Sequence record: PQ464590.1
Direction: 5' to 3' (one strand)
DNA length: 64,000 bases
Shown here one piece after another: positions 7,221 to 51,000 of this stretch. Under the pieces are notes generated by a model. It searched no databases and was not told the DNA's origin. It saw only the letters and a program-made list of their open reading frames with translations. The translations under genes and the position numbers were made by a program. Each line of letters starts with the position of its first letter. The first letter of the stretch is position 1.

Positions 7221-7303
7221 GATATATTCTCTCTTAATAGTGGGGAGAGTCATTCTCTCCCCTATGCCAGCCATTATACAGTACTGGCGTATGGTGTCAA
7301 CAA

Positions 7304-8158: not shown

Positions 8159-8324
8159 TCTTTCCCCTTATTAGAGTATAATTGCAATTGCTCATTATGA
8201 GCACGGACAGATTGAATCGCCTCAATAAATTCTATTTGAGACTTTTCTTTCTTAAAATTATTAGTACTGTTATTCAGTACTGAATTAATAGGAGTAATCA
8301 TTTCTTTTATTCCTAAATTAAAAA

Positions 8325-8352: not shown

Positions 8353-8712
8353 TTATTTCTTTACCTGAACACAGGAGCCAGTATATTTTCCAATTACTTG
8401 TTTATCTTTATAGATATAAGCAATTGCACCAAGCTTACCTGATTCATTCTTCATAACACCCAATTTATCAATAACCAGGGTTACATCTGAACTATCACCG
8501 ATAGGATAGATAAACATTTCTTGTCCCATCCCGATCAACTGATATTTCGTGTATTGCGTTTCATCAGTGACGGTTTCTACGTCTTGCCCGTTCACGTCGA
8601 TGTTACACTTGTACATCGGCCAGGCTTGATCTTTGATAGCTTCAGTGATAGGATTGTTAGCCAGTACTGAAGTACTAAAGAGCAATGCCCCTAACAAGAA
8701 TGCTCGTTTCAT
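8353..8712 (-). CDS. exported hypothetical protein
   Basis: Signal peptide MKRAFLLGALLFSTSVLA-N. Confidence 0.7.
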   Translation of the reverse strand: MKRAFLLGALLFSTSVLANNPITEAIKDQAWPMYKCNIDVNGQDVETVTDETQYTKYQLIGMGQEMFIYPIGDSSDVTLVIDKLGVMKNESGKLGAIAYIYKDKQVIGKYTGSCVQVKK

Positions 8713-8872
8713 AATGCCTTTACCGCCTTTACGATGTCTTTGACTGAACGGTTAGCATACACCATTACTTCGATCATTGCAATGGCTTTTGGTGAAACAT
8801 TGCCAACTTTATTCAGTACTGCTTCAAATACCTGGTCTTGCTTGCTCATGATAGTACTCTCGTTTAGATTAA

Positions 8873-8948
8873 GGGTCGGGGCTGAGTGGATTCGAACCAC
8901 ACTTATTCAGTACTCGAACTGTTCTACCTGTTGAACTATCTAGCCCCG
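8873..8948 (-). tRNA. non-canonical tRNA-like element (76 nt; possible mimic or pseudogene)
   Basis: D-arm GTTC-AACAGGTA-GAAC; T-arm GTGG-TTCGAAT-CCAC; acceptor CGGGGCT/AGCCCCG; degenerate anticodon arm GTTC-GAGTACT-GAAT; ends ACCC. Confidence 0.7.
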
Positions 8949-10216
8949 ATGTAATACATCTTACTCTTCGTCGTCGCCGTTGTCAAGCGAAACATCAAAC
9001 AAATTTAAAATTTCGTGTCTGTGCTGGAGTAGAAATTCTGTGATCGCGATGTTATCATAAGGCGATAAGCCAGTGTTAGGACGTTCAGCACGGACAGTAC
9101 TGATCATTTTACCAACGAGATTATTAATCTCTTCCTCGTTCGCTTCAATGGCTTTCTTTGCTGAATCGTACAGCTTGCCTTTGTATTCGAATTTGGTAAC
9201 AGGTCGAATCTTTGCCATTTCTTTTTCCTCTTAAGGGTTAGGGTACTTCAGTACTGGAATACTGTTTCCCCTGGGGTGTGGCTGGTTACTTGACTTGATT
9301 GATTATACAGTACTGGCTAATGATGTCAATACCTTTTACATGAAATCGATCAGACCCATGTTAGATGCAATTTCGACGGCCTGGACTTTATCAGCGTCAA
9401 CTGGTACAAGATGTTTAAACGTCAACGCCAGATCACCGCAGAAGTAATAGAACGTGTTTTCGTTATAGGTGCAACGTTCGCCAGCGTCCTCAACCTCATC
9501 GCTATGGAAGAAAGGCATCCCTTCGTTGAAAACATATGCAACCGCGAGATCGATGTTATCCGCACGTACCAGGCGTTTAACAGTTTCGGTGTACTCACCC
9601 TGGCGAGCTTCCATAGTACAAACAAACAGGTTCAGGCCAGTAGCTTCGGTCATGGTTACGTTAGACATAATTTAATTCCTTAATGGTTGGTTAGTGTCGT
9701 TTCAATAAAGTTATTATGCCAGTACTATCAATCTATGTCAATAGTACTGGAGTAAAACTTTATGCGGTTTTCTTCTCTATAGTTACGTAAGTACTAAGAC
9801 CCGCGTACCAGTCTTTAAAGCCACGGCATTTACGCCCCGCTTCCTGGATGCTAACATAGAATGTGCCTGGCTCGCGTTCTCCGTTGTCAACTTCGGCGGT
9901 GAGTTTGGTAATGGCTTCAGTCAGTGCTACCTGGCAAGCCGCAACGTTTTTGACATCGTTAAAGATAGTACCGCAGAAGTTAGGAGTACCGTTGTAACGC
10001 ACACGAACGAAACCATCGGATACTTCACAGTTACGGAAAGAGATTTTGAGATCCATGTTAATTCACCTTAATGTTTGAGAGTAGAACCATTTCCCCTCTC
10101 GATGTAAACAATTATACAGTAATGAAGATCTATTGCAAGCATTATTTTAAAATATTCAGTACTTTTATTTGAATCTTTTCGCTTGACATACAACGCCAGT
10201 ACTGTATAATTAGTAC

Positions 10217-23541: not shown

Positions 23542-24750
23542 ATGATACCTTTTGCAAGAATGATACAGTACGGGAATGTTGTACAAGAAAATAAGATAGT
23601 TAAGATTGATAATAATGTTGCTGCTGGGGTGTTGTTATTATCTAGTACTGGTGATTTATATGGTTTCGGTCCTAATGGTGCATATCAATTAGGGTTAGGA
23701 CATAACAATGCGGTGACTACACCGACATTATTATTCAGTGGTGTTAAGAATTTTTGGAGTGCTGGAGGTGATTCGGTACTACAGACTACGGATGATAAAT
23801 TTTATGCTGCTGGGGTTGGTAATATAATTGACGCGGCGAACACTTCCAGGCAGGTATGGACTGATATAACTTCTGTCTTTTCTGCTGTTGACATATCAGA
23901 TATTAAGAAAGTAGATATAAAGGCGAACTGTTTAGCAGTACTGACAAATTCGGGGAATTTATATTGTGCAGGATACAATGGTTATATGGCATATAATGGT
24001 ACTGCTACAGTTCGGTACGCGAACTTAACATTAGTTCGTTCTGATGTAATTGATATTAAGGGCAATTACAATTTAGGTTTATTTACATTAAGGACTAATG
24101 GTAAAATATATGGTGGGGGATATAATACATCTGCCCAGATGGGTTCAAACGGTGGTGATTCACAGAATCCTAATACAGTAGTATATTATTCTGGGATTAC
24201 AGGGTCAAGTGATTGGTCTTATGCAAATTTAGATTGTTTATACACATGTAGGACTGGTACATTTTTGAACAACGCAAAATTAGTAACTGGTTCTGATACC
24301 TCTCTAAAAATGCGTGTAAGTGGTACTGGTACTGATGGTTCCTTATCTGGGGTAACTGGTAAATGGTCGGGATTCCAGACTGCATGGGGTTCTGAAAACA
24401 TACTACAAGCTGAAAACATTTTAAAGGGATTTGATAGTAGTGCTAATACTACATCTCCATTTTTACTTACTAGTGATGGTATATGGACATGTGGTAATAA
24501 TGCATATGGTCAGCAGGGAACAGGTGACGTATCGAACAAATTAATTTATACTAGAAATAGTAAAATAGATAGTATTGTTAAAGATTATAGTAAATTAACT
24601 ATTTTTAATGCAGCATTTTATACTTCGTACTTCGTATATGATAATAAATTATACGGGACTGGTGCGTTAGGTTTTGCCAATGCTGGATCGTTAATACCTG
24701 GTCACAGTACTGGGTCTAGTGTATATGTAGAAATACCACTACCATTTTAA
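23542..24750 (+). CDS. RCC1/BLIP-II-like beta-propeller with MIPF tag
   Basis: G.LY..G.N..GQLG.G repeats. Confidence 0.8.
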   Translation: MIPFARMIQYGNVVQENKIVKIDNNVAAGVLLLSSTGDLYGFGPNGAYQLGLGHNNAVTTPTLLFSGVKNFWSAGGDSVLQTTDDKFYAAGVGNIIDAANTSRQVWTDITSVFSAVDISDIKKVDIKANCLAVLTNSGNLYCAGYNGYMAYNGTATVRYANLTLVRSDVIDIKGNYNLGLFTLRTNGKIYGGGYNTSAQMGSNGGDSQNPNTVVYYSGITGSSDWSYANLDCLYTCRTGTFLNNAKLVTGSDTSLKMRVSGTGTDGSLSGVTGKWSGFQTAWGSENILQAENILKGFDSSANTTSPFLLTSDGIWTCGNNAYGQQGTGDVSNKLIYTRNSKIDSIVKDYSKLTIFNAAFYTSYFVYDNKLYGTGALGFANAGSLIPGHSTGSSVYVEIPLPF

Positions 24751-24762
24751 GGAGAGAGAGAA

Positions 24763-25890
24763 ATGATACCGTTTGCAAGGATGATACAATACGGGAATGT
24801 TGTTACCCCAATAGAAGAATATGACAGAAGTATGCAATCTCAATATAATGCGGTATATTATTTGCATCGTAATGGGGATTTATATTCGTACGGGAATAAT
24901 AACTTAGGTCAATTGGGCGTTGGTGATGCTGCGAACCGAACTGTATGGACAAAAGTACTGCAAGATGTTAAAAAGTACTGGTTAGGTGTTCATGGATGTT
25001 TAGCAGTAAAGACCGATGGTTCATTGTGGTACACTGGTAGTGCTACTGCGTTTCCACAGTTAGGTTCAACAACATATGTGTTTATTAATGTGGACTCATA
25101 TTTTTCTGGTGTTGGAATTGATAGTGCCATGATTCGAGATGTTATGATAACAGATAGTATTAAGGTTATAACAACTGATGGAAGATTTTTATATTGTGGT
25201 TCAAACGGGTCTAGACAACTAGGTACTGGTTTAACAGCTAACGTTCCAACATTAACATTTGATCCTAATTTTACAAATATAGTATCTATGGGTGGAGCAT
25301 TTGATAACACAGTACTGATATTATCTAATGGTGAAGCATGGCAAGCGGGTGCTTATCGTAATAATACAGGCGGGAGCACGAACCGAAATCCATTTGCTAA
25401 AGTTCTTGATGGTGTAAAATATTGCGGTTCTGCATTTCAAAGTACATATTATTTCATGTTAGATGGGACAATCAAAGTTACTGGATATAATAGTTATGGT
25501 CAATTGAGTACTGGTAATACTACAAATACACCAGAGGGTTCAATGGTACAAATATCACATACGTACGATCCAAATTCGGATATTAAAATTTATACATCTT
25601 TATCTAACAATGCTGGAACATCACCAGTACTGTATCATAATGGATTATTATGGAGATGTGGGAGTAACTCAACAGGACAGGTAGGTATTGGTTCAGTTGT
25701 ATCACCACAAACACTGTTAGTTAATCCTTTAATGACAAACGTTCCTAGTGTTAAATATTTCAGTGCTGATAATATAAGATTCTTTGTTATTGATAATGAA
25801 TATAAATTATATACATGTGGGTCGGTGTCATTAAATGGTGTTCCTAATTTGGATACATTAACATACGCTGGCGTACAGCCGTGGAATTAA
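24763..25890 (+). CDS. RCC1/BLIP-II-like beta-propeller with MIPF tag
   Basis: GDLYSYGNNNLGQLGVG and related repeats. Confidence 0.8.
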   Translation: MIPFARMIQYGNVVTPIEEYDRSMQSQYNAVYYLHRNGDLYSYGNNNLGQLGVGDAANRTVWTKVLQDVKKYWLGVHGCLAVKTDGSLWYTGSATAFPQLGSTTYVFINVDSYFSGVGIDSAMIRDVMITDSIKVITTDGRFLYCGSNGSRQLGTGLTANVPTLTFDPNFTNIVSMGGAFDNTVLILSNGEAWQAGAYRNNTGGSTNRNPFAKVLDGVKYCGSAFQSTYYFMLDGTIKVTGYNSYGQLSTGNTTNTPEGSMVQISHTYDPNSDIKIYTSLSNNAGTSPVLYHNGLLWRCGSNSTGQVGIGSVVSPQTLLVNPLMTNVPSVKYFSADNIRFFVIDNEYKLYTCGSVSLNGVPNLDTLTYAGVQPWN

Positions 25891-25900
25891 GGAGAGAGAT

Positions 25901-27040
25901 ATGTTACCATTCGCAAGAATGATACAGTACGGAAATGTTGTACAGGTAAAGGATATAGTTGATATACAAGTATCCAGAACTCACGCATTAGTACTGGATA
26001 GTGATGGAAACTTATGGGGTCGTGGAACTAACACGAACAACATATTAAACCACACTGGAATGAGTAATACTAGTACTTTTGTATTAGTTGATACTGGAGT
26101 GACTGCAATGTTTTGTGGTTATATCCTTACCCTGTATGTAAAGAACGGGGTATTATATAGAATTGGTTCATCAATGACATGGGACACCGGAGCGGTTCTA
26201 GTACCGACTGCGGTTTCTATTCCATTTTCTGCTGCATCCATTAAGAAGATTCAATGCGTTACCAGTACTAGTATAATGATACTATTGAATGATGGTACTA
26301 TGTGGTACAAAGGTGCAGGTACTAACGGTAGATTTGGTAATGGCAGTACTGCATCTGTTAGTACATGGACATTAAGTACTGTTACTGATATAAAAGACAT
26401 ATATCATTGTGTATGCTTTTTAGAAGGTAGTACAGCGTTTAGTATCTTATTGAAGAATGATGGTACTGTATGGGGAGCAGGTAGTGTAGCACTGAATACT
26501 ACGTCTAATACATTTAGATTCAATTCATACTTAAGCACTGCAACGTGGTTCCAGCGTACAATACAGAGTGATATAGTTCAGATTGCGGCTGGATCAGGTA
26601 GTAGTGTTTTATTCCTGGACAGTACTGGTGTATTGCGTGGAGATGGAAATACCAATGGTGAATTAAGTGGGAATACCACGTCTGGTACGTACAATAATAC
26701 ATTAATGGCTAACGGTGTGAAGTTATTTGGTCTGAACTGGGAAAGTTCATATTATGTACAGACTGCTACGCCTACGGTATTAAATGCTGGTGGACGAAAT
26801 TATAATTTATCGTCCTCATTCACTTCACCTGGTTCGTATGTAGGTAGAGTCAGTACTGATTTATCAGAGGAGATTAAGGCAATATATACAACCAGGGGTG
26901 TTGATATTGGTTTTGGTATTACTTATATTTCATTACAGGGTAATAACGTAGTAATGGGTGGTAACAGTACTGCTTATCAGTTAGGTGTGAATACTGGGAA
27001 TATCAATTTAGTTCAAAGTAACTTACCTGGTGTAAGTTAA
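25901..27040 (+). CDS. RCC1/BLIP-II-like beta-propeller with MLPF tag
   Basis: HALVLDSDGNLWGRGTN repeats. Confidence 0.8.
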   Translation: MLPFARMIQYGNVVQVKDIVDIQVSRTHALVLDSDGNLWGRGTNTNNILNHTGMSNTSTFVLVDTGVTAMFCGYILTLYVKNGVLYRIGSSMTWDTGAVLVPTAVSIPFSAASIKKIQCVTSTSIMILLNDGTMWYKGAGTNGRFGNGSTASVSTWTLSTVTDIKDIYHCVCFLEGSTAFSILLKNDGTVWGAGSVALNTTSNTFRFNSYLSTATWFQRTIQSDIVQIAAGSGSSVLFLDSTGVLRGDGNTNGELSGNTTSGTYNNTLMANGVKLFGLNWESSYYVQTATPTVLNAGGRNYNLSSSFTSPGSYVGRVSTDLSEEIKAIYTTRGVDIGFGITYISLQGNNVVMGGNSTAYQLGVNTGNINLVQSNLPGVS

Positions 27041-27044
27041 CAGG

Positions 27045-27077
27045 ATGCCTGGTACTTTTGGGTACTGGGCATTTTTA
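27045..27077 (+). terminator. intrinsic terminator
   Basis: ATGCCTGGTAC/GTACTGGGCAT 11-bp stem plus TTTTT; near copy at 31782-31814. Confidence 0.75.
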
Positions 27078-27110
27078 ATTAAATACTGTATATTAAATGA
27101 GGGGATTTAT

Positions 27111-28304
27111 ATGATACCTTTTTCAAGGATGATAAAATACGGGAATGTTGTTGACCCTATTAGTACTGATAATATTAAACGGGTGGATGCGAATTCATCA
27201 GGAGGTATGGGAATATTGTACAACAATGGTGATTTGTGGGTTCGTGGAACTAATAACTTTGGATGTTTAGGCACTGGTAATAATTCTCCAGTTACTTCAT
27301 GGACGTTAGTTCGTTCAGGCGTAGATGACTTTTGTTTAGGTGTTACTGGAATGTTGGTAAAGAGTTCCGATGGTAAATTATTATATAATGGGCGTGACTC
27401 AATTTTGAATAATAATACAACATTTTTACAATTTGCTGATTACACCGCACAATTTACGCCATCTGGTTTTTCGGTTCATAATATTAAGCAGATGCAGGTA
27501 GGACAATATAGTGTATTAATACTAATGAATAATGGGGTATTATTGGCATTTGGAAGAAATAACTCAGGAGAATTCGGTGACGGGTCATCTAGTAGTACTT
27601 CAGGGTTGGCAATCCGACAGGTAGCGGCTAATGTTGATAAAATCCAATTATACAATTTAAATTCTGGATATTTAAGTGATGGAAAATTCTATCGTGCTGG
27701 ATATAATGCTAACTATGCGTTAGGTAATGGAACTACTAGTGATATACGGACTTTTCAGGTATATAATCCACCAAGTGGTGAAAGTGCAATTATAGATTTC
27801 AACATAACAAATTACGGTACACGATTATTAACCTTATCAAGTACTTCAGGATATAACATGTATCAGTGTGGTATTAACACGAGTTATCATTTAGGGGTAA
27901 ACAGTACTACTGCTACTTTTGTTATTCCAACATTTAGTACTATGCAATCTATATTGCCATCATCAAATATAGAGTCGCACGCACTTAATATAAAGGGTCA
28001 AGTTAGTTTAGGGGATTTAATATTGCCTAAACAGAATCCTAATTCTTATTTCTGGGTTAGTGGTGATAATAGAAATGGTGCATTTGGTACGGGTGATACG
28101 GCTAACATTTCTGCGTTGTCAATGATTGGTGGTAAAGGTTTACCTAATAATATTGATTATAGTTCTGAATATGTACATGTAGTTTCTTGTTCATTTAATT
28201 CTAATTTTATACTCATGAACAATACCATTTATGGGTGCGGGGTGAACTCTGGATTCGGTTTAAATAGTACAACGTTTGTTAGTTTAGGAACATATCCAAC
28301 TTAG
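27111..28304 (+). CDS. RCC1/BLIP-II-like beta-propeller with MIPF tag
   Basis: Start reassigned to MIPFSRM after GAGGGG RBS; RCC1-like repeats. Confidence 0.8.
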   Translation: MIPFSRMIKYGNVVDPISTDNIKRVDANSSGGMGILYNNGDLWVRGTNNFGCLGTGNNSPVTSWTLVRSGVDDFCLGVTGMLVKSSDGKLLYNGRDSILNNNTTFLQFADYTAQFTPSGFSVHNIKQMQVGQYSVLILMNNGVLLAFGRNNSGEFGDGSSSSTSGLAIRQVAANVDKIQLYNLNSGYLSDGKFYRAGYNANYALGNGTTSDIRTFQVYNPPSGESAIIDFNITNYGTRLLTLSSTSGYNMYQCGINTSYHLGVNSTTATFVIPTFSTMQSILPSSNIESHALNIKGQVSLGDLILPKQNPNSYFWVSGDNRNGAFGTGDTANISALSMIGGKGLPNNIDYSSEYVHVVSCSFNSNFILMNNTIYGCGVNSGFGLNSTTFVSLGTYPT

Positions 28305-28316
28305 GAGAATAAAAAA

Positions 28317-29468
28317 ATGATACCTTTTGCGAGGATGATAAAGTACGGGCAAGTTATCCAACCATTGCCTGGAGTAAAGAAGATATTAGCTGCGTCTTCA
28401 TGGTGTATGGTGCTATATGAGAATGGTGATTTATATGCACGTGGGCGGAATGCTGGAAGTACATTTGGTGATGGTTCAGCATCTAACACAGACGTTATTG
28501 GTGATTGGAAATTAATACAGTCCAGTGTCAAGGATGTATGGAGTTCATTAGGAACAACGTTCTGTATTACAATGGACAATAGAGTGTTAAGTTCAGGAGC
28601 AATACGTGGATTAACTGGTGGAACTGCTAATAGTACTCAAATATTCACTGACAGAACTAGTATTTTTACGGATGCTGGTTTAGCAGTACAAGATATAGTT
28701 GATATGTCAGTTGGCCCGTACGATGTATATGCATTGACAGTTTCAGGTACAGTATATAGTGGTGGCACTAACTTTTCAGGCCAGCACGGTACTGGAAATA
28801 CCACAGCTAGGGCATTTGCATTGAATACGAATTTTGTGAATGTTAAGAAGATCAGTTCATATGGTGCACAGGGCGGAACCTTCTGGTACTTAGACACATC
28901 TAACACATTATATGGCACCGGAAATGGTTCTGTTGGTCAGTTATTATCGGTATCCGGCACTGTCAGTACTAAGAGAGTTTTGAGTACTGATGTAATTGAT
29001 TACAGTGCGAATATTAACTGTTTCTTTATTATAAAGAGTGATGGTTTATATTGTGCTGGTTCTCAATTCAACGGACAATTAGGTGATGGAGTTAACAGTT
29101 CTAACATAGGTAATGTCGGTAGGACTACATTATTTAAGCATGAACAATTTACATCAGCCCCGTCATATGTTTATAACGATACATATATGACTGTTGTTCG
29201 TTATAATGATACTTGGTACGTATGTGGTAACGTAGCTAAGAGTGGTTATGGTCAAAATAATAGCTCCGCGTCTTTTGTAGTTAACAGTACTACAGTACCG
29301 AAAGTGTCTGATCCTAAATGGGCAATTGGCAATAATAACTCTTATGTAATATCGGAGTTCGGGGTATTACATGGTACTGGTACATATTCAGCAGCTACTG
29401 ATTTGTTACCTGGCTATACTGTTGCCCAATATACGTTTGTACCATTAAGCACGGCAGGGATACAATAA
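28317..29468 (+). CDS. RCC1/BLIP-II-like beta-propeller with MIPF tag
   Basis: GDLYARGRN and GQLGDG repeats. Confidence 0.8.
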   Translation: MIPFARMIKYGQVIQPLPGVKKILAASSWCMVLYENGDLYARGRNAGSTFGDGSASNTDVIGDWKLIQSSVKDVWSSLGTTFCITMDNRVLSSGAIRGLTGGTANSTQIFTDRTSIFTDAGLAVQDIVDMSVGPYDVYALTVSGTVYSGGTNFSGQHGTGNTTARAFALNTNFVNVKKISSYGAQGGTFWYLDTSNTLYGTGNGSVGQLLSVSGTVSTKRVLSTDVIDYSANINCFFIIKSDGLYCAGSQFNGQLGDGVNSSNIGNVGRTTLFKHEQFTSAPSYVYNDTYMTVVRYNDTWYVCGNVAKSGYGQNNSSASFVVNSTTVPKVSDPKWAIGNNNSYVISEFGVLHGTGTYSAATDLLPGYTVAQYTFVPLSTAGIQ

Positions 29469-29483
29469 GGAGATTAAAAAAAA

Positions 29484-30620
29484 ATGATACCGTTTTCTAG
29501 ATTAATAAAGTATGGTAACATACGAGAGGTTAAAATACAAAAAATTGATACGACGAACACAAGTACGGTCGTACTATTTGATAATGGTGAACTTTATGGC
29601 TTCGGTCAAAATTCCTTTGGTGTTCTTGGGTTGGGACATACTGATATAGTATTTGATATGACACTATTGAATACGGGCGTTAGTGACGTATGGTGTGCAC
29701 AGTCTGATATATTAATTAGAAAAGGTGACAACTTTTATTATGCAGGTGCTGGTCAAATTATTGGTAGTACTAGTGTATCAAGTAGCGTTTTTGTTGATTG
29801 TACATCGATGTTTGGAACTCTCAATAAGGGAAATATCAAAAAAATACAGTTAAGTTTAGGTACATTAGTACTAATGAATGATAATAAGCTTTATGCTTGT
29901 GGTTTCAATAATGGTTTTTATGGTAATGGCTCATTCAACCGAGTTTCAGCACTAACACAGGTTCAAACTGATGTTCTTGACGTGAAGACTAACAGAAATG
30001 GTACAGCCTGGATAAAGAAAACTGATAATAGACTTTATGCTTGTGGTCAGAACAGTTCATATCAAACAGGTGCAGGTACTAGTTCAACGGTAGCTTCCTA
30101 TACTTTAATATCTAAATTTACTACAGTTGATTTAGATAATTTATCAGTAGCTGATAGTACTGCATTTTATTACACTGGGGCTGCTTTATATGGTTCAGGA
30201 ACCAAAATGGGAAATGGAAATAACACCAGTACTTCACAGAACTTTAATGGTTCCGTTGTTTTTAATTTAGCTAACTATGTTAGGATGTATAGTACGAATT
30301 GGGGAACGACCGCTCCATTTATTATGGGTTCTAGTACTGGTAATGGTATTCCTGATTCATTAAATTTCTGTGGTTCAAATACATACGGTGCATATGGTAC
30401 GGGTACTACTGGGACAGTAACTGCATTTACACCTATGAGTACCTTGAATTCGGTACTGTCTGATTTTACAAAGATTACGCATATTCAATCCAACGCATAT
30501 GGTACATATGTGGTGGCTGATAATAAATTGTACTGTGCAGGGAATGCTGCTGGTGGTGCGGTTCCAGGAGTTAACACTGGTAATCAATTATCATTTATAG
30601 AAGTTGAGTTACCCATATAA
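29484..30620 (+). CDS. RCC1/BLIP-II-like beta-propeller with MIPF tag
   Basis: GELYGFGQNSFGVLGLG; closest in pattern to 23542..24750. Confidence 0.8.
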   Translation: MIPFSRLIKYGNIREVKIQKIDTTNTSTVVLFDNGELYGFGQNSFGVLGLGHTDIVFDMTLLNTGVSDVWCAQSDILIRKGDNFYYAGAGQIIGSTSVSSSVFVDCTSMFGTLNKGNIKKIQLSLGTLVLMNDNKLYACGFNNGFYGNGSFNRVSALTQVQTDVLDVKTNRNGTAWIKKTDNRLYACGQNSSYQTGAGTSSTVASYTLISKFTTVDLDNLSVADSTAFYYTGAALYGSGTKMGNGNNTSTSQNFNGSVVFNLANYVRMYSTNWGTTAPFIMGSSTGNGIPDSLNFCGSNTYGAYGTGTTGTVTAFTPMSTLNSVLSDFTKITHIQSNAYGTYVVADNKLYCAGNAAGGAVPGVNTGNQLSFIEVELPI

Positions 30621-30629
30621 GGAGGGATT

Positions 30630-31775
30630 ATGATACCATTCGCAAGAATGATACAGTACGGGAATAATATTCCCAGGGCTGCAAGAATACAAACAGTAAA
30701 AACATTACAGTACAACGTGTTTATTTTATTGGATGATGGTAGGTTATATGGTCGTGGACGAAATCAAAACTATCAATTAGGTACTGGTGTAAACACACCA
30801 ACTATAGTTGAAGAATGGACTTTATGTTTAGAGAACGTAAAGGAATTTTGGTGCACTGGCTCAGTTAGTGGTATATTGGCTGTAAAGTACGATGGCACTT
30901 GGTGGAGTACTGGACAGCAAACCTACAGAGGTATTACAACTATACACCAAACCTGGACCGATGTTACGTCTATTTTTAGTACTGTAACTAATACATATCA
31001 GAAAATAGTAATTGGTAGTGGTGTTACACTATTACTAACTAACACTGGTGAATTGTACAAAATGGGATATAATGTAAATGGTGAAGTTTTCACTGGAAAT
31101 GCAACTACACGGGTTACAACATTAACATTAACCCCTGAAGTTAATGTTGTTGATATTGGTGCATCAATGGATACATCATCATTTGTATTATACGCAGATG
31201 GTACATTGAAGGGTTCTGGTAATAATGGCTCTTGGACTAGTGGCTCTACACTAGTAACCACATTAACTACAATAACGACTGGTGTATTAAAGATTAACTC
31301 TGAGAATTCTTATAATGCTGTGTACGTACAAAAGAGTGATGGTATATATGTTGCAGGTTCACAATTCATGGGCCAATTGGGTGATGGTGTAAATGGTTCT
31401 GCCAGTACTTCACGCTCTATATACAAGATTCCAGTAGCTACGAATCCAGGGGAAGTAGATTACATTGGTTCTTCTAACTACGTAGTACATATGCGTAGTA
31501 CTAGTGGTGTGTGGTATTTTGCTGGTCGTGATGGTAGACAGGCTGGTAATGGAATAACATCTAGTTCAGCAATAACAACATATACTGCGTTGCCAAACAT
31601 CGGAATGAACAGTACTGAAATGTCACACACGTATTTGATTACATTCGTTGTAATTGATGGCGTTTTATATGGCTCAGGAAATGGAAGCACGACTTCTGGA
31701 TTAGGAGTTATACCATATGTAGAAGCTGGTGCTGGTAGTACTGGTTTATTCAAGATGATAAACACGCCTAGTTAA
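30630..31775 (+). CDS. RCC1/BLIP-II-like beta-propeller with MIPF tag
   Basis: GRLYGRGRNQNYQLGTG repeats. Confidence 0.8.
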   Translation: MIPFARMIQYGNNIPRAARIQTVKTLQYNVFILLDDGRLYGRGRNQNYQLGTGVNTPTIVEEWTLCLENVKEFWCTGSVSGILAVKYDGTWWSTGQQTYRGITTIHQTWTDVTSIFSTVTNTYQKIVIGSGVTLLLTNTGELYKMGYNVNGEVFTGNATTRVTTLTLTPEVNVVDIGASMDTSSFVLYADGTLKGSGNNGSWTSGSTLVTTLTTITTGVLKINSENSYNAVYVQKSDGIYVAGSQFMGQLGDGVNGSASTSRSIYKIPVATNPGEVDYIGSSNYVVHMRSTSGVWYFAGRDGRQAGNGITSSSAITTYTALPNIGMNSTEMSHTYLITFVVIDGVLYGSGNGSTTSGLGVIPYVEAGAGSTGLFKMINTPS

Positions 31776-31848
31776 GTATATATGCCTAGTACTTCAACAG
31801 TACTGGGCATTTTTAATTAAATACGTTATATTATAAATGGAGGTACAG

Positions 31849-33003
31849 ATGATACCATTTACAAGAATGATAAAATACGGAAGAAATATAGTTACAAATG
31901 ATATTAAGAAGATGGTAGCCAGTACGAACAGTATTGCCCTTCTATATAATAATGGTAATTTATATATGAGGGGTGAGAACTCATTGTCATTATGGGGGAC
32001 TACTGATGCAAATAATAAGTTAGATTGGACATTAGTTCTTACTGATGTACAAGATGTATGGATTGGAGCATATCATACAATAGCACTAATGAATGATGGT
32101 ACGTATTATTGTTGTGGTTATGCTAGGTCGTTAGGTGTAGCTGGAAGTAATAGATTGTGGGAACCATATGCGTTGCTTAATAATCTTATTAGTTCAACTG
32201 GTGATACTGTGAAGAAAATAGAGTGCGGTGTACAGGGTTCTCAAATTCTAATGAGTAATGGGGATTTATATTTTACTGGATTTAATAATGCTTCATGTAT
32301 GGCTCCCTCTTCATTTGGGACCACAGTAACTTCGTTTATTAAATCACTTACGGGTGTAAAAGATGTTAGTTATAATATGAACGCAACGATGGTAATAACA
32401 AATGATAATTTACTTAGAGTTGTGGGTACATCAGATAACCAAAAACTAGCAACACCCTCTAATGGAACAGTATTGTCTGTATGGACAACTAAAAGCTTAC
32501 CTACTGGTTACACATATCCGGTTAGCCTATATGAAGCTTATAGGTCCACATATATATATTGTGCATCGGATAGTTCAGTGACCGACACGGCATTAGTTGG
32601 TGCAGGTTACAACGGATATAATCAGTTAGGGCAACCAGGAACCTTCAACACACCACTAGCAACTTACACTGCTGGTGCAACTAATATTAAAATTACATCA
32701 TTTGGTACTGGCTGGTGGCCTACTGCGTATAGTACTATGTGTACTGATGGTTTACAACTATATTCTGCTGGTCAATTGGGTGCAGCTATGGGCAGTGCGA
32801 CGAACAAGACCACTGGGTTTACAGCGATCCCATTTGAAGCAGGTGCAAGTGCTAGTACAGTTGATGAGTTTTGTATGGCTGGTTCAGCAACAACAACTGG
32901 AGTTACTATGATGAGGTCTGGTAATACTGTATTCGCATGTGGTGTAGCAGCTTGGTTGGGGACTGATCATTTTAATTTAGTTCCAGTATCATTACCAGAA
33001 TAA
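31849..33003 (+). CDS. RCC1/BLIP-II-like beta-propeller with MIPF tag
   Basis: Start reassigned to MIPFTRM after GGAGG RBS. Confidence 0.8.
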   Translation: MIPFTRMIKYGRNIVTNDIKKMVASTNSIALLYNNGNLYMRGENSLSLWGTTDANNKLDWTLVLTDVQDVWIGAYHTIALMNDGTYYCCGYARSLGVAGSNRLWEPYALLNNLISSTGDTVKKIECGVQGSQILMSNGDLYFTGFNNASCMAPSSFGTTVTSFIKSLTGVKDVSYNMNATMVITNDNLLRVVGTSDNQKLATPSNGTVLSVWTTKSLPTGYTYPVSLYEAYRSTYIYCASDSSVTDTALVGAGYNGYNQLGQPGTFNTPLATYTAGATNIKITSFGTGWWPTAYSTMCTDGLQLYSAGQLGAAMGSATNKTTGFTAIPFEAGASASTVDEFCMAGSATTTGVTMMRSGNTVFACGVAAWLGTDHFNLVPVSLPE

Positions 33004-33016
33004 CAAGGAGAATTAA

Positions 33017-33688
33017 ATGATACCTTTTACAAGAATGATTAATTTTGGTAATGTAGTTCGTAACACCAATATTATTGATTTGGATTTTAGAAATGCAATG
33101 TTAGGAACATCAGATGTTCTGGATGTTTCCGATCATCATTATCCATTTACTAAAATTAATAGTACTGGTACTAACGTCATTCAATTTGATAGTACTTTAA
33201 ATACGAATGTTATGTATTTTAATGGAGCACTATATAGTACTCCTATGGTTTCGGACTTATATTTGAGTTCAAAGAACTTCGAAATAGAATTCGTTTACAA
33301 AAGTTTAGCTGGTGGTGTTTCAGTACTATTCGGTACTGGATATTATCCTGATACTGCGAATAGAATATCTGGAATATGCTACCAGATGCATCAGAATACT
33401 GATGCACCACAAACATTTGTTACCGGAACAATTGAAACAAGCTACTGGCGAAATCAAATGTCCGGTGTAGGTGATAATACATGGTACAGAGTTGTTATAA
33501 CACGAACAGGCACTACTGTTTCAGTTTCATGTTACAACATGGCTGGTGCGTTAATTGCTTCACGTTCAGACGGTTCTGGGCAAACATTTGGCAATGGTAC
33601 GTCTTTTGGCATTGGTGGTTACTATAAAACACTAACATCGAACCTGTTTTATGGTTACGTACAGTACTTAAAAATTAAAGAATTATAA
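33017..33688 (+). CDS. ConA/LamG-like lectin-fold protein with MIPF tag
   Basis: YFNG...FEIEF..., WYRVVITRTGT.VS.Y, IGG...F.GYVQYLKI pattern. Confidence 0.7.
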   Translation: MIPFTRMINFGNVVRNTNIIDLDFRNAMLGTSDVLDVSDHHYPFTKINSTGTNVIQFDSTLNTNVMYFNGALYSTPMVSDLYLSSKNFEIEFVYKSLAGGVSVLFGTGYYPDTANRISGICYQMHQNTDAPQTFVTGTIETSYWRNQMSGVGDNTWYRVVITRTGTTVSVSCYNMAGALIASRSDGSGQTFGNGTSFGIGGYYKTLTSNLFYGYVQYLKIKEL

Positions 33689-33690
33689 TT

Positions 33691-33720
33691 AAAAAAAGCC
33701 CCTCAATTGAGGGGCTTTTT
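33691..33720. terminator. bidirectional intrinsic terminator
   Basis: AAAAAAAGCCCCTC-AATT-GAGGGGCTTTTT between convergent gene blocks. Confidence 0.9.
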
Positions 33721-33722
33721 GT

Positions 33723-36700
33723 TTACCATTCCATATCCAGAAGTTTATGAATAGCATAAACTACTATACTGAATATTACAGTACCTATTAGGACAAGTGT
33801 AATCATCCACAAAGTACTCATGATTGGGACGCTATTCATGAAGTAACCAACACCTCCCATTATTGCCATACAAATTTCCACAAAGATGAGGAATGAACAA
33901 TAAGGAGTATCCATTGCTTCACGAACGCCAGAGAATATATCTGTTTCAAAGACATAATCTAACCCAATTACCACCGCTGAACTAATAAAGAACACGTGGT
34001 AATATACTACGAAAAATGTAAGTATTTCCATTGCCATATTATTTTACCGGTTTTGAGGTATTGCGTTATTGAGGACAACGAATGCATTGAATGCTTCGTT
34101 GAGTTCTACTGAATCATAGCGGTCCTGTTTACGAGCACGATGTACTTCATGTTTGCTGTACGTCGTATTCTTATCCATGAACTCTTCGAACTTATCACGG
34201 ATCAGGTTGTTGACACGGTCTGCATACTGTTTAGGAGTGCATTTTGAATCGAAGTTTATGTACTCTTTCGTGACGGTTTCAGTGAATTGTTGCACAGCAA
34301 GGATACGATCCAGTAAGCGACCTTTCGCGTACAGGGCATCGATTTCTTCTTGTGCTTCTTCCTGTGTGCCGAAAGAAAGACGGTGCTGCCATTCACCATT
34401 CTTCTCATTATGATCATAGAACTTATCCCCACCCATAGTACTGAACAGGGTTTTGGATGGATCTTTAGCGTCGATAATAAAGAAACGAGTTACTGAATGG
34501 GTGTTGTTAATGTTCATAGTAGTTCCTCTTGGTATAGATAAAAAGTTTGCTATCTAAAGAAGTATTTAATCAGATGCGACTAAATCCAGTACAGTTATAT
34601 TAGCAGTACTGGATTCAGAAGTCAAGCTTTTTTAGTAACGATTTCTGCGGCGACGTAAAACAACTTCTTCACGGAGGTCAGAGAGCCAGCACCAGCCATA
34701 TATAGCGATGAAGACTACACCAATAAGACTGAAGCAGACAGTACTAATGATGTGTGGATATAGTCTGTATTCCCACCCGAAGATTGCACAACAAATGTAC
34801 CACGCTCCGAATACTACACCTAAAGAAATGAGGATTACCTGAACCTCTTCAACCAAGTCCTCGAACCAATTCCAGATACGAGTATCGAAGAACCAGGACA
34901 CTAACAGGATTCCGTACATTGTCATGATTGCATAAAGTACACAATCAAATACTGCCATGTGATTCAGAACAAATTGCTCCATCAGTATTACCTCAAGTTA
35001 TTAGCACGTTTCAGATCATGACGTTTCATTTTGACCCAGAAGTGAATCTTATCCCACAATGCTTTAGCACCAAGTACTGTGTACATCAGAACAATGAATA
35101 CAGTACTAAACATGATAGATAGTCCTGCGATTGCTAGGATTGGTCTAGACTCCATGAAGTACCCTAACCACAAGAACACACTGAACAGTGAAATGCAGAT
35201 CCAGTACTTGTACAAGTAACGATGTTCATGTTCAGTTACTGTATCATTCAGGCGGTACAGAGTTGGAATACAGAACAGTACTCCAAGTTTCAGTACTACG
35301 AACAGTGTACACATGATACTTGATACAATGATGATGGTCATCATCAGTGGTGTAATAATCATTCTTTTCTCCCGTGCTTACGTTCGTGAATTTTGTGATG
35401 CAGATTCACAAAGAATTTTATAATCGGATTACCTTCACTGAACACTAGTAACCAGATGATTATCGTATTGAACAGCATGATAATCGCACCGAATATGGTG
35501 AATAGGAATGTACCGAAATCAGCTTCAATGAACCACATCGTCCACCATAATAATGTAAGAATGATGTTCGATGCGAACAAGCCGTGGATCGAATCACCTT
35601 CGCTGTCAATATCTTTGTAAGCTTTTTCTGCAATAGTTACACAGAAGAACTTTCCAACGTACAGAAGGATGAACAAAGTACTGTACACTGTCATTGGATA
35701 GATTACACATTTCAATGCTAAGTGCATTGTTTCGAAGTTGATCATTCTTTAGTCCTCTTCTCAATAATCTTTTGGTGCAGCCGCTGCATGAACGGGACAA
35801 TCCCTAAACAAATTAGAATGATTGAACCAGCAGTGAATGCGAACCATGCAAAGAATGCAATCAGAAGCCCAAGCATAACAAGACCTTCAACTTCTGTCAA
35901 CAATCCTAGCCACATCACTACAGTACTAACAATGCCGATAACACCTACAATGATAGGGATGTTGTCTTTCTTCATCTTATCGTACCAATTCCTGAACGGT
36001 GATACGTAGAAGAACTTACCTACAAGTACCCCAAAGAACAGTACTGAGTATACTGTTACAATTGATACCATCTTTACACCTGCTGGTGAGAGTATATCCA
36101 TTAGTAATCCTTTAGTCTACGTAAACGTTTATGGAAATCACGTAGTGCGAACACACTAAACGAAATGAGCCACGCGATTAGACAGCCTCCAGCAATCGCT
36201 GCTGCGGCGATTCCGATCCCGATATCAATATCAGGGAAGTACGCATAAACGAAGCCTAGAGCCGCTGCAATCGTTGCCAGTACAGTAGTGATGATGGCGA
36301 ACGGTAGCCCGTCGAAGTCCCATGACTCGTACTGGATTTGGTTATCGAACCATTTAGAACCAGGGAGGCAGAAGAACCACATCACCCAGCACAGGAGCCA
36401 CAATGTCAGTACTGCAAATGAGAAGATAGCCATTATTTTATCTTATTCCCCACAATGTTTTCACGGAACGCCATTAGTTTCTTATGAACCGTTGGAATCA
36501 CGGCCACAACAAAGAACCCGAAGAAGAATAGACCATTGATGTAAATTCCAATCTTAGGTCCAAGAGCCAGATCTATAAGATATACCAAACTCGTGAACAA
36601 TGCAAGTGTTGGTACGCAGCGTACAAAATCTGCATTAGGGAATAACCACAAGAAGCTATCCCGTTTGAAGAACCACAGTACTAAACCGAGTAGTGACCAC

Positions 36701-43672: not shown

Positions 43673-44847
43673 GATTTAATCCTCGTTTGTTTGTGTTCGT
43701 ACATAATACAAAAAGGGCTGACCGAAGTCAACCCTTTTCTTTTATTTTTTCACTTCAATTAGTTCTTTGATTCTTTCGGACCAACGTTTCATGAATCCTT
43801 TACTGTAGCATTCGTACACCCAAACCCATGAACAGAACATAGTGTAGTACATGATACCTTGACCTACCTGAATCCATAATGAATTCGGATCGATATCATC
43901 AGGGGTATCATGAGTTAGTGCAACACACAGAATCAGAATCACAATAGCAATGATCCCAGTAATCACATTGGCTATCCACTTCGATTCAAACGGATTCAAA
44001 TTCAAGAAATCAGTAATCTTATTGTCGTGGATTGACTCTAAGATAGTTCCAATTGTGAACAGAATACCGATGAAAAACATTGGTAGAGCTAAAAAATCCA
44101 TCATGTTCATTATTCTTCATCCTTACGTTTTGCTGGTGGTACGGAACGTTCAAACTTCCAGGCCACATCTTTATTCAATGACCAAATGAGAGCAAGTACC
44201 CATAATACGACCATCTGACTAAGTGCCAGATGTACACTAACATCCGATAACATACTCATAGTGAATCCACCAATCATGATAAGACAGTTGATGAACGCTA
44301 ATTTGTTGTGCTTACGAATCACAGCAATGATTACTGGAATAAAACACACAACAAGACTAAAAATAAGAATCCAAATCTCTAACATCAAAACTCTCCTATA
44401 GAAGTAATTTCACAATCACCAGGGAACAGTACTCCATTCAGTTCTACAGACATTGAACAGTACTTACGACCATCAGCATACAGGCCAGTACGAACAGAGT
44501 GCAGATCAGGCATCTCAATTGGCTTAGGTTCAGGGGCAGCCGTGCTCATCACCAACATCAGTAACATACTATTCATTACTTCTCCACTACTGTAAAGTTA
44601 GCTTTCATAGCCATTTCAATCATATCTTCAGTACAGCACATGATTGCATGTGTTAGTGTATTACAATCCCAGTTCTCATGGAGAACGATGAACTTCATAT
44701 TGAAGTTCGGATCAACACGAATAGTTAGTTCAGGATACTTGTCACGTAGAGTATGAAGGATGACACGCTCTAACTGGAATGTATCATCACCATCCCAACC
44801 AGTGTTTGGTTGAAAGCGAACGATACATTCTTGTGTTGTTTTTATAT

Positions 44848-45558
44848 TCATACCATTACCTCAAAATCTGGATCAGCTTCAGTTATTGGGATCTCACGGC
44901 GGAGGTCGTTAGCCAGTGGATCAGTGATAATTACCTTCTGGTCAACCGTGAGCATGATGTTGCCACGATGCACATCTAAGCGATGCGTATCTTTGAAGGT
45001 ATCATAGATTGCCTTGGCTAGCATAACATACTCTCTCATTTCATTCAAGTACTTATCACGCTTAGGCTTTCTCATACCACGTGTATTCATATTGTTCTTT
45101 AGCTGATAGTCAATCATATCAATACTGTACGATGCGTGCTGGATGATATTTACAATGTCACCAATTTTTGGTGTTGGGAACTCACAATAACCAAAGCCAT
45201 GTTGTGCCCATTTTGCACATGGATAATACTTCTCAAGTTCGTACCATGCGAAGTTACCTTGTTCCATCGCACTATACACGTTAGGGATTAAAGGCTCTCC
45301 AGCGTGCTCTATGCAATACTTAGCGTACGCCCTGTACCCATCCCAGCGTGAAGTACTGACCTTGAATACGCGGCCTGGATGCTCTTCATGCTCTACTACC
45401 ACGGAGTACATACCGATACCCAGGACGGTTAAGCCAGTATTCTTTAAACCAGAGTTTATTGCTTCCTGTGCGTTCTTCGTTGAGAACTCCATATCAGTAC
45501 GGATAGTTTCTGATTTCAGGACGTTGATTAATGTTTTGAAGATTTCATAACTGGTCAT
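44848..45558 (-). CDS. T7 gp0.7-like Ser/Thr protein kinase domain
   Basis: LGIGMYSVV..H..HPGRVFKV, IPNVY, DVHRGNIM, IITDP match the T7-kinase pattern as recalled. Confidence 0.8.
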   Translation of the reverse strand: MTSYEIFKTLINVLKSETIRTDMEFSTKNAQEAINSGLKNTGLTVLGIGMYSVVVEHEEHPGRVFKVSTSRWDGYRAYAKYCIEHAGEPLIPNVYSAMEQGNFAWYELEKYYPCAKWAQHGFGYCEFPTPKIGDIVNIIQHASYSIDMIDYQLKNNMNTRGMRKPKRDKYLNEMREYVMLAKAIYDTFKDTHRLDVHRGNIMLTVDQKVIITDPLANDLRREIPITEADPDFEVMV

Positions 45559-48053: not shown

Positions 48054-51000
48054 TTCAGAACCCTCTCGTTTAATGTATGCCAGTATTATAACAGTACTGG
48101 CATTATTGTCAATCACCGTTCACGATATTTTTGATCTCTTCCAGACGAGGATAAGCTTCAATCACAACGGCCTCAATCGCTTGCATGATGTCGCCATTAT
48201 GTTTGCGGTACACGAGCGGCTCGCCGTACAGTACACCATCGTACTGACGATCTATCTCTACTGATACGGACACACACCATGAATCAACCAAGATGGTTGC
48301 TCCAGCTTGCACAATCTCTTCTGCCATTTTACTAATAGTCATGTTATCTCCAAATAGAAACGGGTACTCATTGAGTACCCATTATTGTTACTGGCAAATA
48401 CCTTCTTCAAGGATATTCATCTGACTGTTACGGATCTGATAAACAACACCGTCAGTACTTTGAGCCATAGCTAGCATTTTACCGGCTTTGTTACCCTGGA
48501 ACACGTACACTTCAGTACCGTCATCGAGTGATCCAGTTTTGACGAAGGTGAAGATTACGCTACCAAATTGCAACTTAGACCCAGAAGAGTACACGCGATG
48601 TTGTGTACCATCTGCACGCTGACACTGTAGAACATCAGCGGCTGCTGTACCAGATACCAGTGCAGAAACTGCCAGTACTGCACCGATCACTAAACGTTTC
48701 ATTTTGAACCCCTTATTCTTTGATGATACCCATAATTTCGTCGAACTTTTCACCAATACTTTTGGTGGCAGAATCAACACAAGTTCCTGCGGTTACTGGA
48801 GTTTCGTACACTACTTTACCAGCGTAGAAACCTGCACCTAAACCAATTACTAATGCTAAAACATACGGCATATTTTAAATCTCCTAAAGGATTACGTAAA
48901 TTGCAGAGAAGTATACCATCACGAATGTCAGAAAGCAAGCTGATGGTGCTAGTATTTCTAAAATATCCAGTACTGAATATTTCATTACGCGTACACACCA
49001 GCCATGATGTCATTGATGACCTGCTCTACACTCGCGGGTACGTAGAACTCTTTGTTCGTTTCGAGGTTATGAATGTAGATCTCTTGCAGACAACCACCAC
49101 TTTCAACCGATCCACCAGTACTAACTGATACACGATAACCGTTCAGATTGAAGATGAACGCAGCATCAACTGGTTTCATGAAGGTATCTGGACGTTTAGT
49201 GCTCAGAGAGATGATGGTGAAGCCTTGGATATTCAGTTCATGTGACATAGTTTAATCCTCTTTGTTAGTTAAGGGTGACGGGAGAGGGATTGTAACCCCC
49301 AAAGACATCCAGCATTACCTGTTTAGATGCTGCTTTTTAACTTTTAAGCTACCCCGTCTTGTTGAAGCTAGTATCTCAGAAACCGTCAAACTCGTCAAGC
49401 ATTATTTTACTCTTTTTTAGTAGCAGAACCACGCACGACACGCAGGGCATTTTACACCACCACCTGGAGCACAAGCAGTGTCTGGATGTAAACAGTACTT
49501 CTCGCCACTGTACAGTTCGTTGTTCGCTTCGTATACTTTATTGATTTTCTCGAAACCAATAACCTGATGACCGTATCCGTCAGTAAGACTAACGTACTCG
49601 CAGTTGTCTTTGCGAATACGATTCACAAAGTTCACGCCATCACGAACATTGTCGTACTGTTGGAGTGAGGATTTCGGATAGTCTTTCATCTTGTAGTTGA
49701 TTGATACAACACTCATTTTACTTCTCCTTCACTGCACAAACAAATGCCCACTCTGAATTGGTTAGTAATGCGATCTTACCTTTGGAAGTTATAAGGTAAA
49801 TGTCTTCCCCGCTATAATCCAATTTGTCATAGCTAACATCGTATTTTTTATACTTAGTGAACGCCGCCTTAAATCCAGCGTCCAGTACTTTGTTTAGGAA
49901 ATCACGTACCTTTGTATTTTTATAAAATACAGTACGTTCAATAGTAACTTCACTAAGATCACGCCACTTCTCATCACCTAGTAGGTCATGCACATTCACA
50001 GGTTGTTCTCCTTCATGAATTTTTCAGCTTTATAGTTGAAACAGTAGTTCACATTAGCAGGGAACCCCATGTTACTCAGGATGGTATTCAGACGCTGTGC
50101 AGCATCATCTTCACCACATGCCCAGAAACCAGGAAGACCCAAGAACTCACACCAGTACGCACGACCATAATCGTCAATGTCAGCAGGGCAAGTCTCATCG
50201 GACTCTACCCAACGAGCCATACCATAACCGCTCATGTTGTCTTTGTACAGTACTAAATCATCCATGCAATCGCAGTTCGCTTCCAGGTCGCATTCACATG
50301 CAGATACATCAGTGCGGATAACGTAGTGAGGGATGATAGATTTGATATTTTTGATGTTCATTTGTATTTCCTCTTAAACGGTGGGGAGACATTCCCCACT
50401 TGATGTAATCAGTATAACAGACTATTCAGTACTGTCAACTATTTTAGAACGCGTGACAACGACAGTCTACTAATTCTTCGCGACAATCGAAGCAGGTGCT
50501 TTCAACCTCATGATGTTCTGCGTTGTCAACATCACCGACGCGACATTCATCAGTCGGACCAAAGGTGATAGTGAGTAGTTCATGGTTCTTAGTACACCAC
50601 AACCCAATAGTTTTGAATGGTCCATCTTCACTGAACTGCACTACAAAACCTTCAACACGTTTCTTGATAGATTCGAGTTGGCGTTTGAACTCAACGAATA
50701 CTTCTCCCTTACTGAAGCGTAGGGAATCAGTGAAATCTTCCAGGTGCTTACCGATATGGGCATCGCGTGGTAGCTGGATGTAGTTACGATTCAGTACTTT
50801 AGCGTTATGTTCTGCTTCTACCAGGGCTGCATCTAATTCAATACGAGTCATCTTTTATCCTCTGTGTTGTTGTTGGTGCTGATTATACATTACTGTTCAG
50901 CAGTGTCAAGCTCTTCTGGAACTTTTCTTAGAGCCACGTCCATACTCAATAATATGAACACCATGTACAGAAGAACATTCAGTACAGTAGGCGAGTCCAT

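Follow-up and report, generated by a model that had tools for sequence, protein, structure and literature searches.

A conserved tRNA-shaped element with non-decoding features ahead of a predicted early operon of Erwinia phage Hallingskeid

Erwinia phage Hallingskeid (PQ464590.1; genome 366,158 bp), a remote member of the Rak2-like group of jumbo phages, was found to carry a 76-nt element, designated element 1, which on the sequence evidence appears to be a conserved, non-decoding, tRNA-shaped RNA under selection. The window analysed comprised nt 1-64000 of the genome, and element 1 lies at 8948..8873 on its minus strand, where the initial annotation had correctly placed it, in a 111-nt gap between CDS0028 and CDS0027 in which the deposited record annotates no feature. 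We tentatively regard it as a t-element-like processing or leader module, a reading that we hold at a little under an even chance.

Read from C8948, element 1 consists of a 7-bp helix (CGGGGCU/AGCCCCG), a bulged A, the two pairs GA/UC and then U8-A9, the 5' strand of this extended acceptor-type helix, CGGGGCU(A)GA (8939..8948, minus strand, as are all the parts that follow), being paired with the 3' strand UC-AGCCCCG (8877..8885). The D-arm, GUUC/AACAGGUA/GAAC (8921..8936), retains A14, G18, G19 and A21, and the T-arm, GUGG/UUCGAAU/CCAC (8886..8900), with a 4-bp stem and a canonical loop, is invariant in all copies. Between these arms are A26, the equivalent of the anticodon arm, GUUC(G) AGUAC (U)GAAU (8905..8919), and a variable region of 4 bases. 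In the anticodon-arm equivalent, which holds the genome-wide AGTACTG motif, the four pairs of the stem GUUC/GAAU are invariant, the fifth pair (here G.U) is variable, the AGUAC loop is only 5 nt long and U33 is absent. The 3' tail (8873..8876) reads ACCC (CC in the variant called form B below) and never CCA. The initial description of this element, namely a canonical D-arm and T-loop, a bulged and extended acceptor, a broken anticodon arm and a CCC end, was thus accurate in each of these respects.

A search with the whole Rfam library over the 64 kb matched positions 8878-8945 (minus strand) to the tRNA family RF00005 with 33.1 bits (gathering threshold, 29; E, 0.0045), as against 54-71 bits for the six genuine Hallingskeid tRNAs that were scored. 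ARAGORN, which the initial annotation had suggested as a check, reported neither a tRNA at element 1 nor a tmRNA in the window at default settings, but called element 1 as Tyr (GUA) at a 90% threshold. Searches at E values up to 5 gave no match of element 1 to the Rfam families for tmRNA, YrlA, viral TLS or mascRNA. Element 1 therefore appears to derive from a tRNA. The genuine tRNA nearest to it by model score was Hallingskeid's own tRNA-Arg(UCU), with which it has CGGGGC and A73 in common; since DNA searches of a phage collection with the locus or the element alone returned only the source genome or short T-arm matches, we do not name the ancestral tRNA. Enrichment of the shared tail CACCCTTAA was looked for but not found. 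None of the anticodon loops seen (AGUAC, of 5 nt; G/U/C-AGUAC-U; AGCAGUC) contains U33, and the loop sequence is not conserved. Similarly, no version possesses the 7-bp acceptor and 5-bp T stem, stacked to 12 bp, that are expected of a decoding tRNA, and the encoded 3' end is ACCC or CC(U), whereas the seven genuine tRNAs all end in CCA, although CCA might still be added to element 1 once its end has been trimmed.

Twenty metagenome contigs were obtained by exact-protein look-ups, for which CDS0027 and six CDS0026 homologs (97-54% identical) served as queries, and a pattern scan of JGI metagenomes added one further copy, of form A, giving a total of 21 relatives. Element 1 was present in every one of them, in a gap of 111-112 nt, and occurred in nine distinct versions, all with an acceptor helix of 9 bp with a bulge, or of 10 bp, and a 4-bp T stem. 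None has a canonical anticodon loop, 7/5 stems or CCA; the non-canonical features are accordingly kept in all 21 metagenomic relatives, and a canonical tRNA at this position, a possibility raised in the initial annotation, was found in none. Element 1 remains 93-99% identical where the neighbouring genes fall to 73-87%. For example, in L022/23 the element is 96% identical, compared with 82% for the promoter, 87% for the spacer, 76% for CDS0027 and 77% for CDS0026, and in L013, L016 and L018 the respective values are 97% for the element and 84-90% for CDS0028; in L020/L021, however, CDS0028 is conserved to the same degree as the element. The locus is a mosaic, and element 1 is its best-conserved piece. 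Pattern scans of IMG/VR for element 1 and a CDS0026 protein scan of IMG/VR gave no match. The Rak2-like phages EJP2, SE_PL, fENko-Kae01, Munch and 121Q keep the CDS0027 homolog with no tRNA-like element upstream, and none was found either in Enc34, which alone among other phages has a homolog of CDS0028. Absence from the five more distant Rak2-like phages suggests that the element was acquired in the Hallingskeid lineage.

Among the relatives, variation is found at D-loop positions 16, 17 and 20, at the fifth anticodon-stem pair and at two bases of the variable region, and in L022-24 a C to U change in the acceptor 3' strand leaves a G.U pair. Every substitution either falls in a loop or leaves pairing intact, the one exception being the fifth anticodon-stem pair, where three versions have a mismatch. 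In form B (L026-29), the terminal pair is changed from C-G to A-U, an inserted U pairs with the formerly bulged A so that a perfect 10-bp helix with the unbulged 5' strand AGGGGCUAGA results, and the fifth anticodon-stem pair is changed from G.U to U-A, giving the arm GUUCU AGCAGUC AGAAU with a 7-nt loop; the minimum-energy and centroid folds of form B both reproduce this cloverleaf exactly (z = -3.96). In a model-fitted alignment of element 1, 98.8% of cells pair, but only one pair shows a two-sided change and 57 of 500 shuffles scored as high, because the changes are confined to one lineage and the aligner gapped the terminal pair of form B. The predicted structure is thus well supported by conservation but only suggestively by covariation. 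Since the odd traits are kept across relatives while the changes preserve structure, these traits look selected.

A predicted sigma-70-type promoter, TTGACA-17-TAAGAT, ends 9 nt upstream of element 1. Its -35 hexamer (TTGACA; 8981..8986, minus strand) lies inside the 3' end of the upstream gene CDS0028 (85 aa; 8961..9218, minus strand), and its -10 hexamer (TAAGAT; 8958..8963, minus strand), which is TAATAT in several relatives, includes the CDS0028 stop codon. In all relatives the -35 hexamer is TTGACA or TTGACG, while the 17-nt spacer varies at up to 8 positions. A short leader, gtatt(a/g)cat (8949..8957, minus strand), then runs into C/A-GGGG and resembles the CATAGGGG box found after strong early promoters of the phage, and transcription would start 2-4 nt before element 1. 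Downstream, an A/U-rich spacer of 23 nt (8850..8872, minus strand) contains GAGAG, the Shine-Dalgarno sequence of CDS0027, whose start codon is 24 nt beyond the end of element 1; no terminator is present between the two. CDS0027 (46 aa) overlaps CDS0026 (119 aa, with a signal-peptide-like N-terminus), the pair occupying 8353..8849 on the minus strand, and a gene for a Band_7 protein comes next. In fENko-Kae01, the CDS0027 homolog is located within the terminal repeat. In X20, the only run of clearly metatranscriptomic origin with coverage of the downstream genes, a 255-nt contig spans CDS0027 and ends at 8874 inside ACC|C, 1-2 nt from the 3' end of the element; this is a single contig of depth 4.3 whose end might be an assembly accident, as contigs do not record true RNA ends, and those from RNA runs give no strand information.

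The initial annotation had attached weight to the AGTACT of the anticodon arm. We found 327 copies of this hexamer in the window, against about 22 expected, and 3-7 copies per kb throughout Hallingskeid and the five Rak2-like relatives sampled, a 10- to 20-fold over-representation that is absent from the unrelated Enc34. The extended consensus is CAGTACTG, and the chance of encountering the hexamer in a 76-nt stretch is about one in three. As AGTACT is genome-wide and is missing from form B, its place in the anticodon arm needs no special explanation. Copies occur inside genes as well as in promoters (for example, 8263-8281 and 9303-9314; also in L002-L008 and L032), and palindromic-hexamer enrichment on this scale is unusual for a phage, with no report found in a full-text literature search; a role as a protein-binding site or as a target of modification would be a candidate cause. 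The sequence AGTACTGAATAAG in the anticodon arm was considered as an internal promoter but rejected, as it has no -35 at the right spacing, its -10 lacks the final T and it is missing in form B. Between positions 897 and 21541 of the window we observed a family of early promoters, of which AGTACT forms part, composed of TTGACA/TTGCAA, about 11 nt, AGTACTGTATAAT, 5-6 nt and CATAGGGG(A/G), examples being 9302-9329 and 7274-7285. In at least the latter case, GGGG(A)G also provides a very short leader with its Shine-Dalgarno sequence, and the annotated start of CDS0023 at 7274, which overlaps the -10 box, is probably too far upstream.

Seven genuine tRNAs, each with an encoded CCA, are scattered rather than clustered at 86.8-114.7 kb of the genome (L008 22857-38731; L032 576-663), the nearest being about 78 kb from element 1. 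Five of the seven sit 16-24 nt 5' of an ORF start, and for four of these the spacer contains a Shine-Dalgarno sequence; the other two are tRNA-Ser(UGA), immediately followed by tRNA-Arg, and a second tRNA-Ser, whose anticodon ARAGORN gives as ACT. The common plan is CCA, a short A/U-rich spacer, a Shine-Dalgarno sequence and ATG, and a tRNA-Ser has a -10 box 8 nt upstream. By this comparison, element 1 seems to occupy the position typical of a tRNA gene in Hallingskeid, and the arrangement suggests a general punctuation of mRNAs by tRNAs in this phage. Among its genes for RNA handling are those for polynucleotide kinase (Pnk) and an Rnl1-type RNA ligase (L007 13800-16586) and for a T7 gp0.7-type protein kinase (44848-45558, minus strand), which an annotation note describes as acting on RNase E and RNase III.

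The covariance model of element 1 also matched 49265-49362 on the minus strand, where, with Rfam, it revealed a second tRNA-shaped and CCA-less element with an oversized anticodon arm, el2 (49276..49358, minus strand). The initial statement that element 1 lies alone therefore holds at its own locus but not in the phage. With the Rfam tRNA model, el2 scored 37.1 bits in a small-window scan but was filtered out of the 64-kb scans, and neither Rfam nor ARAGORN reported it in whole-window scans. It has 7/5 stems, A73, CCC-UUAA, the T-loop UUACAAU, a D-loop lacking GG and a 16-nt loop on the anticodon stem, and it is preceded by a promoter-like site and followed by an ORF with a Shine-Dalgarno sequence. 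Relaxed ARAGORN searches of 214 kb of Hallingskeid showed this combination of features only in element 1 and el2, a third match (43930-44023) being discarded as a false positive inside an ORF with a poor T-loop. An intron-bearing tRNA was also rejected for el2, as a canonical anticodon loop is never regained when a short insert is taken out. The deposited annotation lays three short plus-strand ORFs (CDS0126-0128; window 48853-49420) over el2 and also over an 87-aa minus-strand ORF (48985-49248), homologs of which, 69-99% identical, were found in seven 90%-identity protein clusters; this ORF is the likelier gene.

Homologs of el2 occur in Hallingskeid relatives, in Erwinia phage Kaldavass (PQ464595.1), in which an unannotated copy (L041:1194-1274, about 64425-64505) lies 8 nt after tRNA-Tyr, and in two IMG/VR jumbo-phage contigs (L044:6592-6684 and L045:7494-7585), one of them within a cluster of 12 tRNAs. 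The element is thus present in at least three jumbo-phage lineages, and none was found among 185,579 bacterial and archaeal genomes scanned. Copies of the el2 type were seen directly 3' of genuine tRNA-Tyr or tRNA-Ser genes in other jumbo phages or IMG/VR contigs. A model-fitted alignment of seven distinct el2 sequences has 99.4% of its cells paired, and two-sided change is seen in 12 of the 24 pairs; none of 500 shuffles reached the observed score, and in slid controls 44-51% pair. Support from covariation thus appears stronger for el2 than for element 1. The loop core AACAGGUAAUGCUG is conserved, and the tails are ACCC, ACCU, UUCU, AACU or AAAG but never CCA. In the L033 group, el2 follows an ORF by 18 nt, leaving no room for a promoter and leader, and therefore would be internal to the transcript.

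In the course of events that we infer, including promoter use, the cleavages and a benefit to the mRNA, host RNA polymerase would start at the element's own early promoter, so that element 1 makes up roughly the first 76 nt of the CDS0027-CDS0026 operon transcript, and the RNA would fold as an L-shaped tRNA mimic with an acceptor/T stack of 13-14 bp instead of 12. Host tRNA-maturation nucleases may then take it for a pre-tRNA: RNase P would cut at the 5' edge of the element, and either RNase E or RNase Z/BN would cut the A/U-rich stretch just past ACC. These cleavages would free a small stable tRNA-shaped RNA and give the downstream mRNA a defined 5' end a few nucleotides ahead of the Shine-Dalgarno sequence, and the genuine tRNA genes lying 16-24 nt before ORFs would act likewise. 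Consistent with such processing are the homology to tRNA, the same odd traits in 21 relatives, an element that outlasts its flanks, both promoter hexamers conserved over a variable spacer, the layout shared with genuine tRNAs and el2, and the X20 contig end at 8874, from one low-depth contig, which agrees with 3' cleavage. RNase P and RNase Z require only the acceptor/T minihelix. The conservation of the D-arm and anticodon stem, however, goes beyond this need and may reflect a partner that recognises the L-shape as a whole. In addition, a leader of 2-4 nt leaves RNase P little to remove, most early operons of the phage are without such an element, as is the syntenic operon in EJP2, SE_PL, fENko-Kae01, Munch and 121Q, and the formal covariation of element 1 is weak (57/500 shuffles). 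On the other side, the T-arm GGTTCGAATCC, invariant in all copies, matches the motif GGTTCRANYCC by which t-elements are found (PMC1920247). The initial suggestion of an RNase P processing signal fits the position, the layout of true tRNAs and one contig end, while the cleavage itself we only infer.

Conservation of the whole L-shape, with its elbow nucleotides and anticodon stem, in excess of what a processing signal needs, favours a role of the processed RNA in trans as a mimic, decoy or sponge. Produced within minutes of infection, it would tie up a host factor recognising the tRNA body, such as a defence nuclease that cleaves tRNA, a toxin that modifies CCA ends or a sensor of uncharged tRNA. 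The 13-14-bp stack and the lack of CCA and of an anticodon loop would keep such a mimic out of translation, and the consistent replacement of CCA by CCC/CCU would leave it uncharged. The predicted sigma-70 promoter and early region, with the fENko-Kae01 homolog of CDS0027 in a terminal repeat, and the phage's investment in tRNA repair (Pnk and the Rnl1-type ligase) also agree with this role, and numerous defences that target tRNAs, as well as tRNA countermeasures of phages, have been described (PMC10264068, PMC11555353, PMC10802454). Nevertheless, the anticodon loop differs by lineage (AGUAC, UAGUACU, AGCAGUC), which therefore argues against mimicry of one particular anticodon-nuclease substrate, and no precedent for a non-decoding tRNA decoy was found in the literature searched. 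A trans-acting role for element 1, of which the decoy proposed in the initial annotation is one form, has an appreciable chance of being correct but is on the unlikely side, and it is somewhat more doubtful that the element 1 and el2 families together are trans-acting mimics that divert host tRNA-recognising proteins as RNA-based anti-defence factors. Still attached to the mRNA, element 1 might instead be a 5'-terminal structure shielding it against decay that depends on the 5' end, or an operator through which a tRNA-binding protein controls CDS0027 translation. The element starts a few nucleotides from where transcription presumably begins and stops 24 nt short of the start codon, the 5' end would be buried in its GC-rich 9-10-bp helix, and the phage has the T7 gp0.7-type kinase annotated as acting on RNase E/RNase III. 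A plain hairpin, however, would suffice in cis, in which case the tRNA-specific loops should not be conserved; moreover, el2 is internal to the transcript in the L033 group, and the X20 contig end (single, depth 4.3) suggests separation from the mRNA, so that we think a purely cis-acting element rather unlikely.

The decaying tRNA of the initial annotation, that is, a pseudogene drifting to loss whose conservation reflects recent common ancestry or block recombination, would be in keeping with the 'pseudo-tRNA' genes reported in Rak2-like phages (PMC3622015, PMC5259590), the mosaic locus, the equal conservation of CDS0028 and the element in L020/L021 and the weak formal covariation. This account is nonetheless improbable, as, in L013, L016, L018 and L022-25, one flank or both have diverged far more than the element, both having done so in L022-24; the stems are intact in all nine versions, save for the fifth anticodon-stem pair, while the loops vary; and form B requires three coordinated changes, one of them an insertion, which keep and extend the helices. 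Decay is thus at odds with odd traits common to all 21 relatives, an element that outlasts its flanks and compensatory changes in one lineage. Far less probable still is that element 1 works as a decoding tRNA despite its unusual anticodon loop, a reading to which the relaxed ARAGORN call (Tyr GUA) and the above-threshold Rfam score might point: U33 and purine 37 are missing, the loop differs by lineage in length and sequence, the helices are 9-10/4 rather than 7/5, CCA is not encoded and the score is 33 bits against 54-71. A long variable arm is a feature of bacterial tRNA-Tyr, but the variable region of element 1 has 4 nt.

Of the known systems, those closest to the preferred processing or leader module are the t-elements of plant mitochondria, where a 74-nt t-element lies in the cox1 leader and cleavage at its 3' end makes the 5' end of the cox1 mRNA (PMC1920247). 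Like element 1, t-elements have a non-canonical cloverleaf with a well-kept T-arm, are non-decoding and lie in an mRNA 5' leader; a tRNA-processing nuclease cuts their 3' end, and the released element can persist (PMC1920247). They are organellar, whereas element 1 is phage-borne, with presumed cleavages, a canonical D-arm and an acceptor helix of 9-10 bp. The mascRNA/MALAT1 and MEN-beta modules also have a tRNA-like fold with a reduced anticodon loop, serve as an RNase P/RNase Z signal and yield a small tRNA-shaped product, but they are eukaryotic and located at the 3' end of a long non-coding RNA, and element 1 has no Rfam match to this family. In tRNA-Sec, the acceptor/T stack is 13 bp (9/4 in eukaryotes and archaea). 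The 9-bp acceptor and 4-bp T stem of element 1 add up to the same 13 bp, a likeness in geometry only, as the UCA anticodon, long variable arm and 6-bp D stem of tRNA-Sec are lacking. RNAC and RNAD of phage T4 are processed like tRNAs. These small stable RNAs are encoded with tRNA genes and their function is still unknown (PMC9697503); they are likened to element 1 by description and are classed as late, whereas element 1 is behind an early-type promoter. 'Pseudo-tRNA' genes have been listed in RaK2 (His and Val; PMC3622015) and CBB (2 of 33; PMC5259590), and, compared by description, they resemble element 1 in having been picked up by tRNA scanners, in their defective features and in belonging to the same group of phages. 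However, they lie in tRNA clusters and were listed without conservation evidence, whereas element 1 was unannotated, lies behind its own predicted promoter and about 78 kb from the nearest tRNA gene, and is conserved. tRNA-like processing signals are therefore established elsewhere, but the literature searched yielded no phage example that combines conservation of the defects as such with 9-10/4 geometry and a place at the head of an early operon.

Two further observations were made in the window. On the plus strand, positions 23542-33003 contain eight consecutive ORFs of 375-419 aa. The PHROGs matched by the first are of the 'regulator of chromosome condensation' (RCC1-like) type, an annotation that the last also carries; if all eight are paralogs, this stretch is a tandem gene array. 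Between convergent genes at 33633-33792, several weak Rfam matches of the leader/terminator type on both strands probably represent a bidirectional terminator, and a similar match was seen in EJP2 (L002 4547-4704).

Phage 'pseudo-tRNAs' are normally dismissed as decay products. The conserved defects of element 1 suggest that at least some of them are functional RNAs, and the deposited annotation omits both element 1 and el2, one of them overlaid by doubtful ORF calls. Should these elements prove to be processing signals, phages would punctuate their transcripts with tRNAs and retain degenerate copies for this purpose alone; should they be mimics, they would bring a new class of RNA countermeasure to the study of tRNA-targeting immunity, a currently active field.
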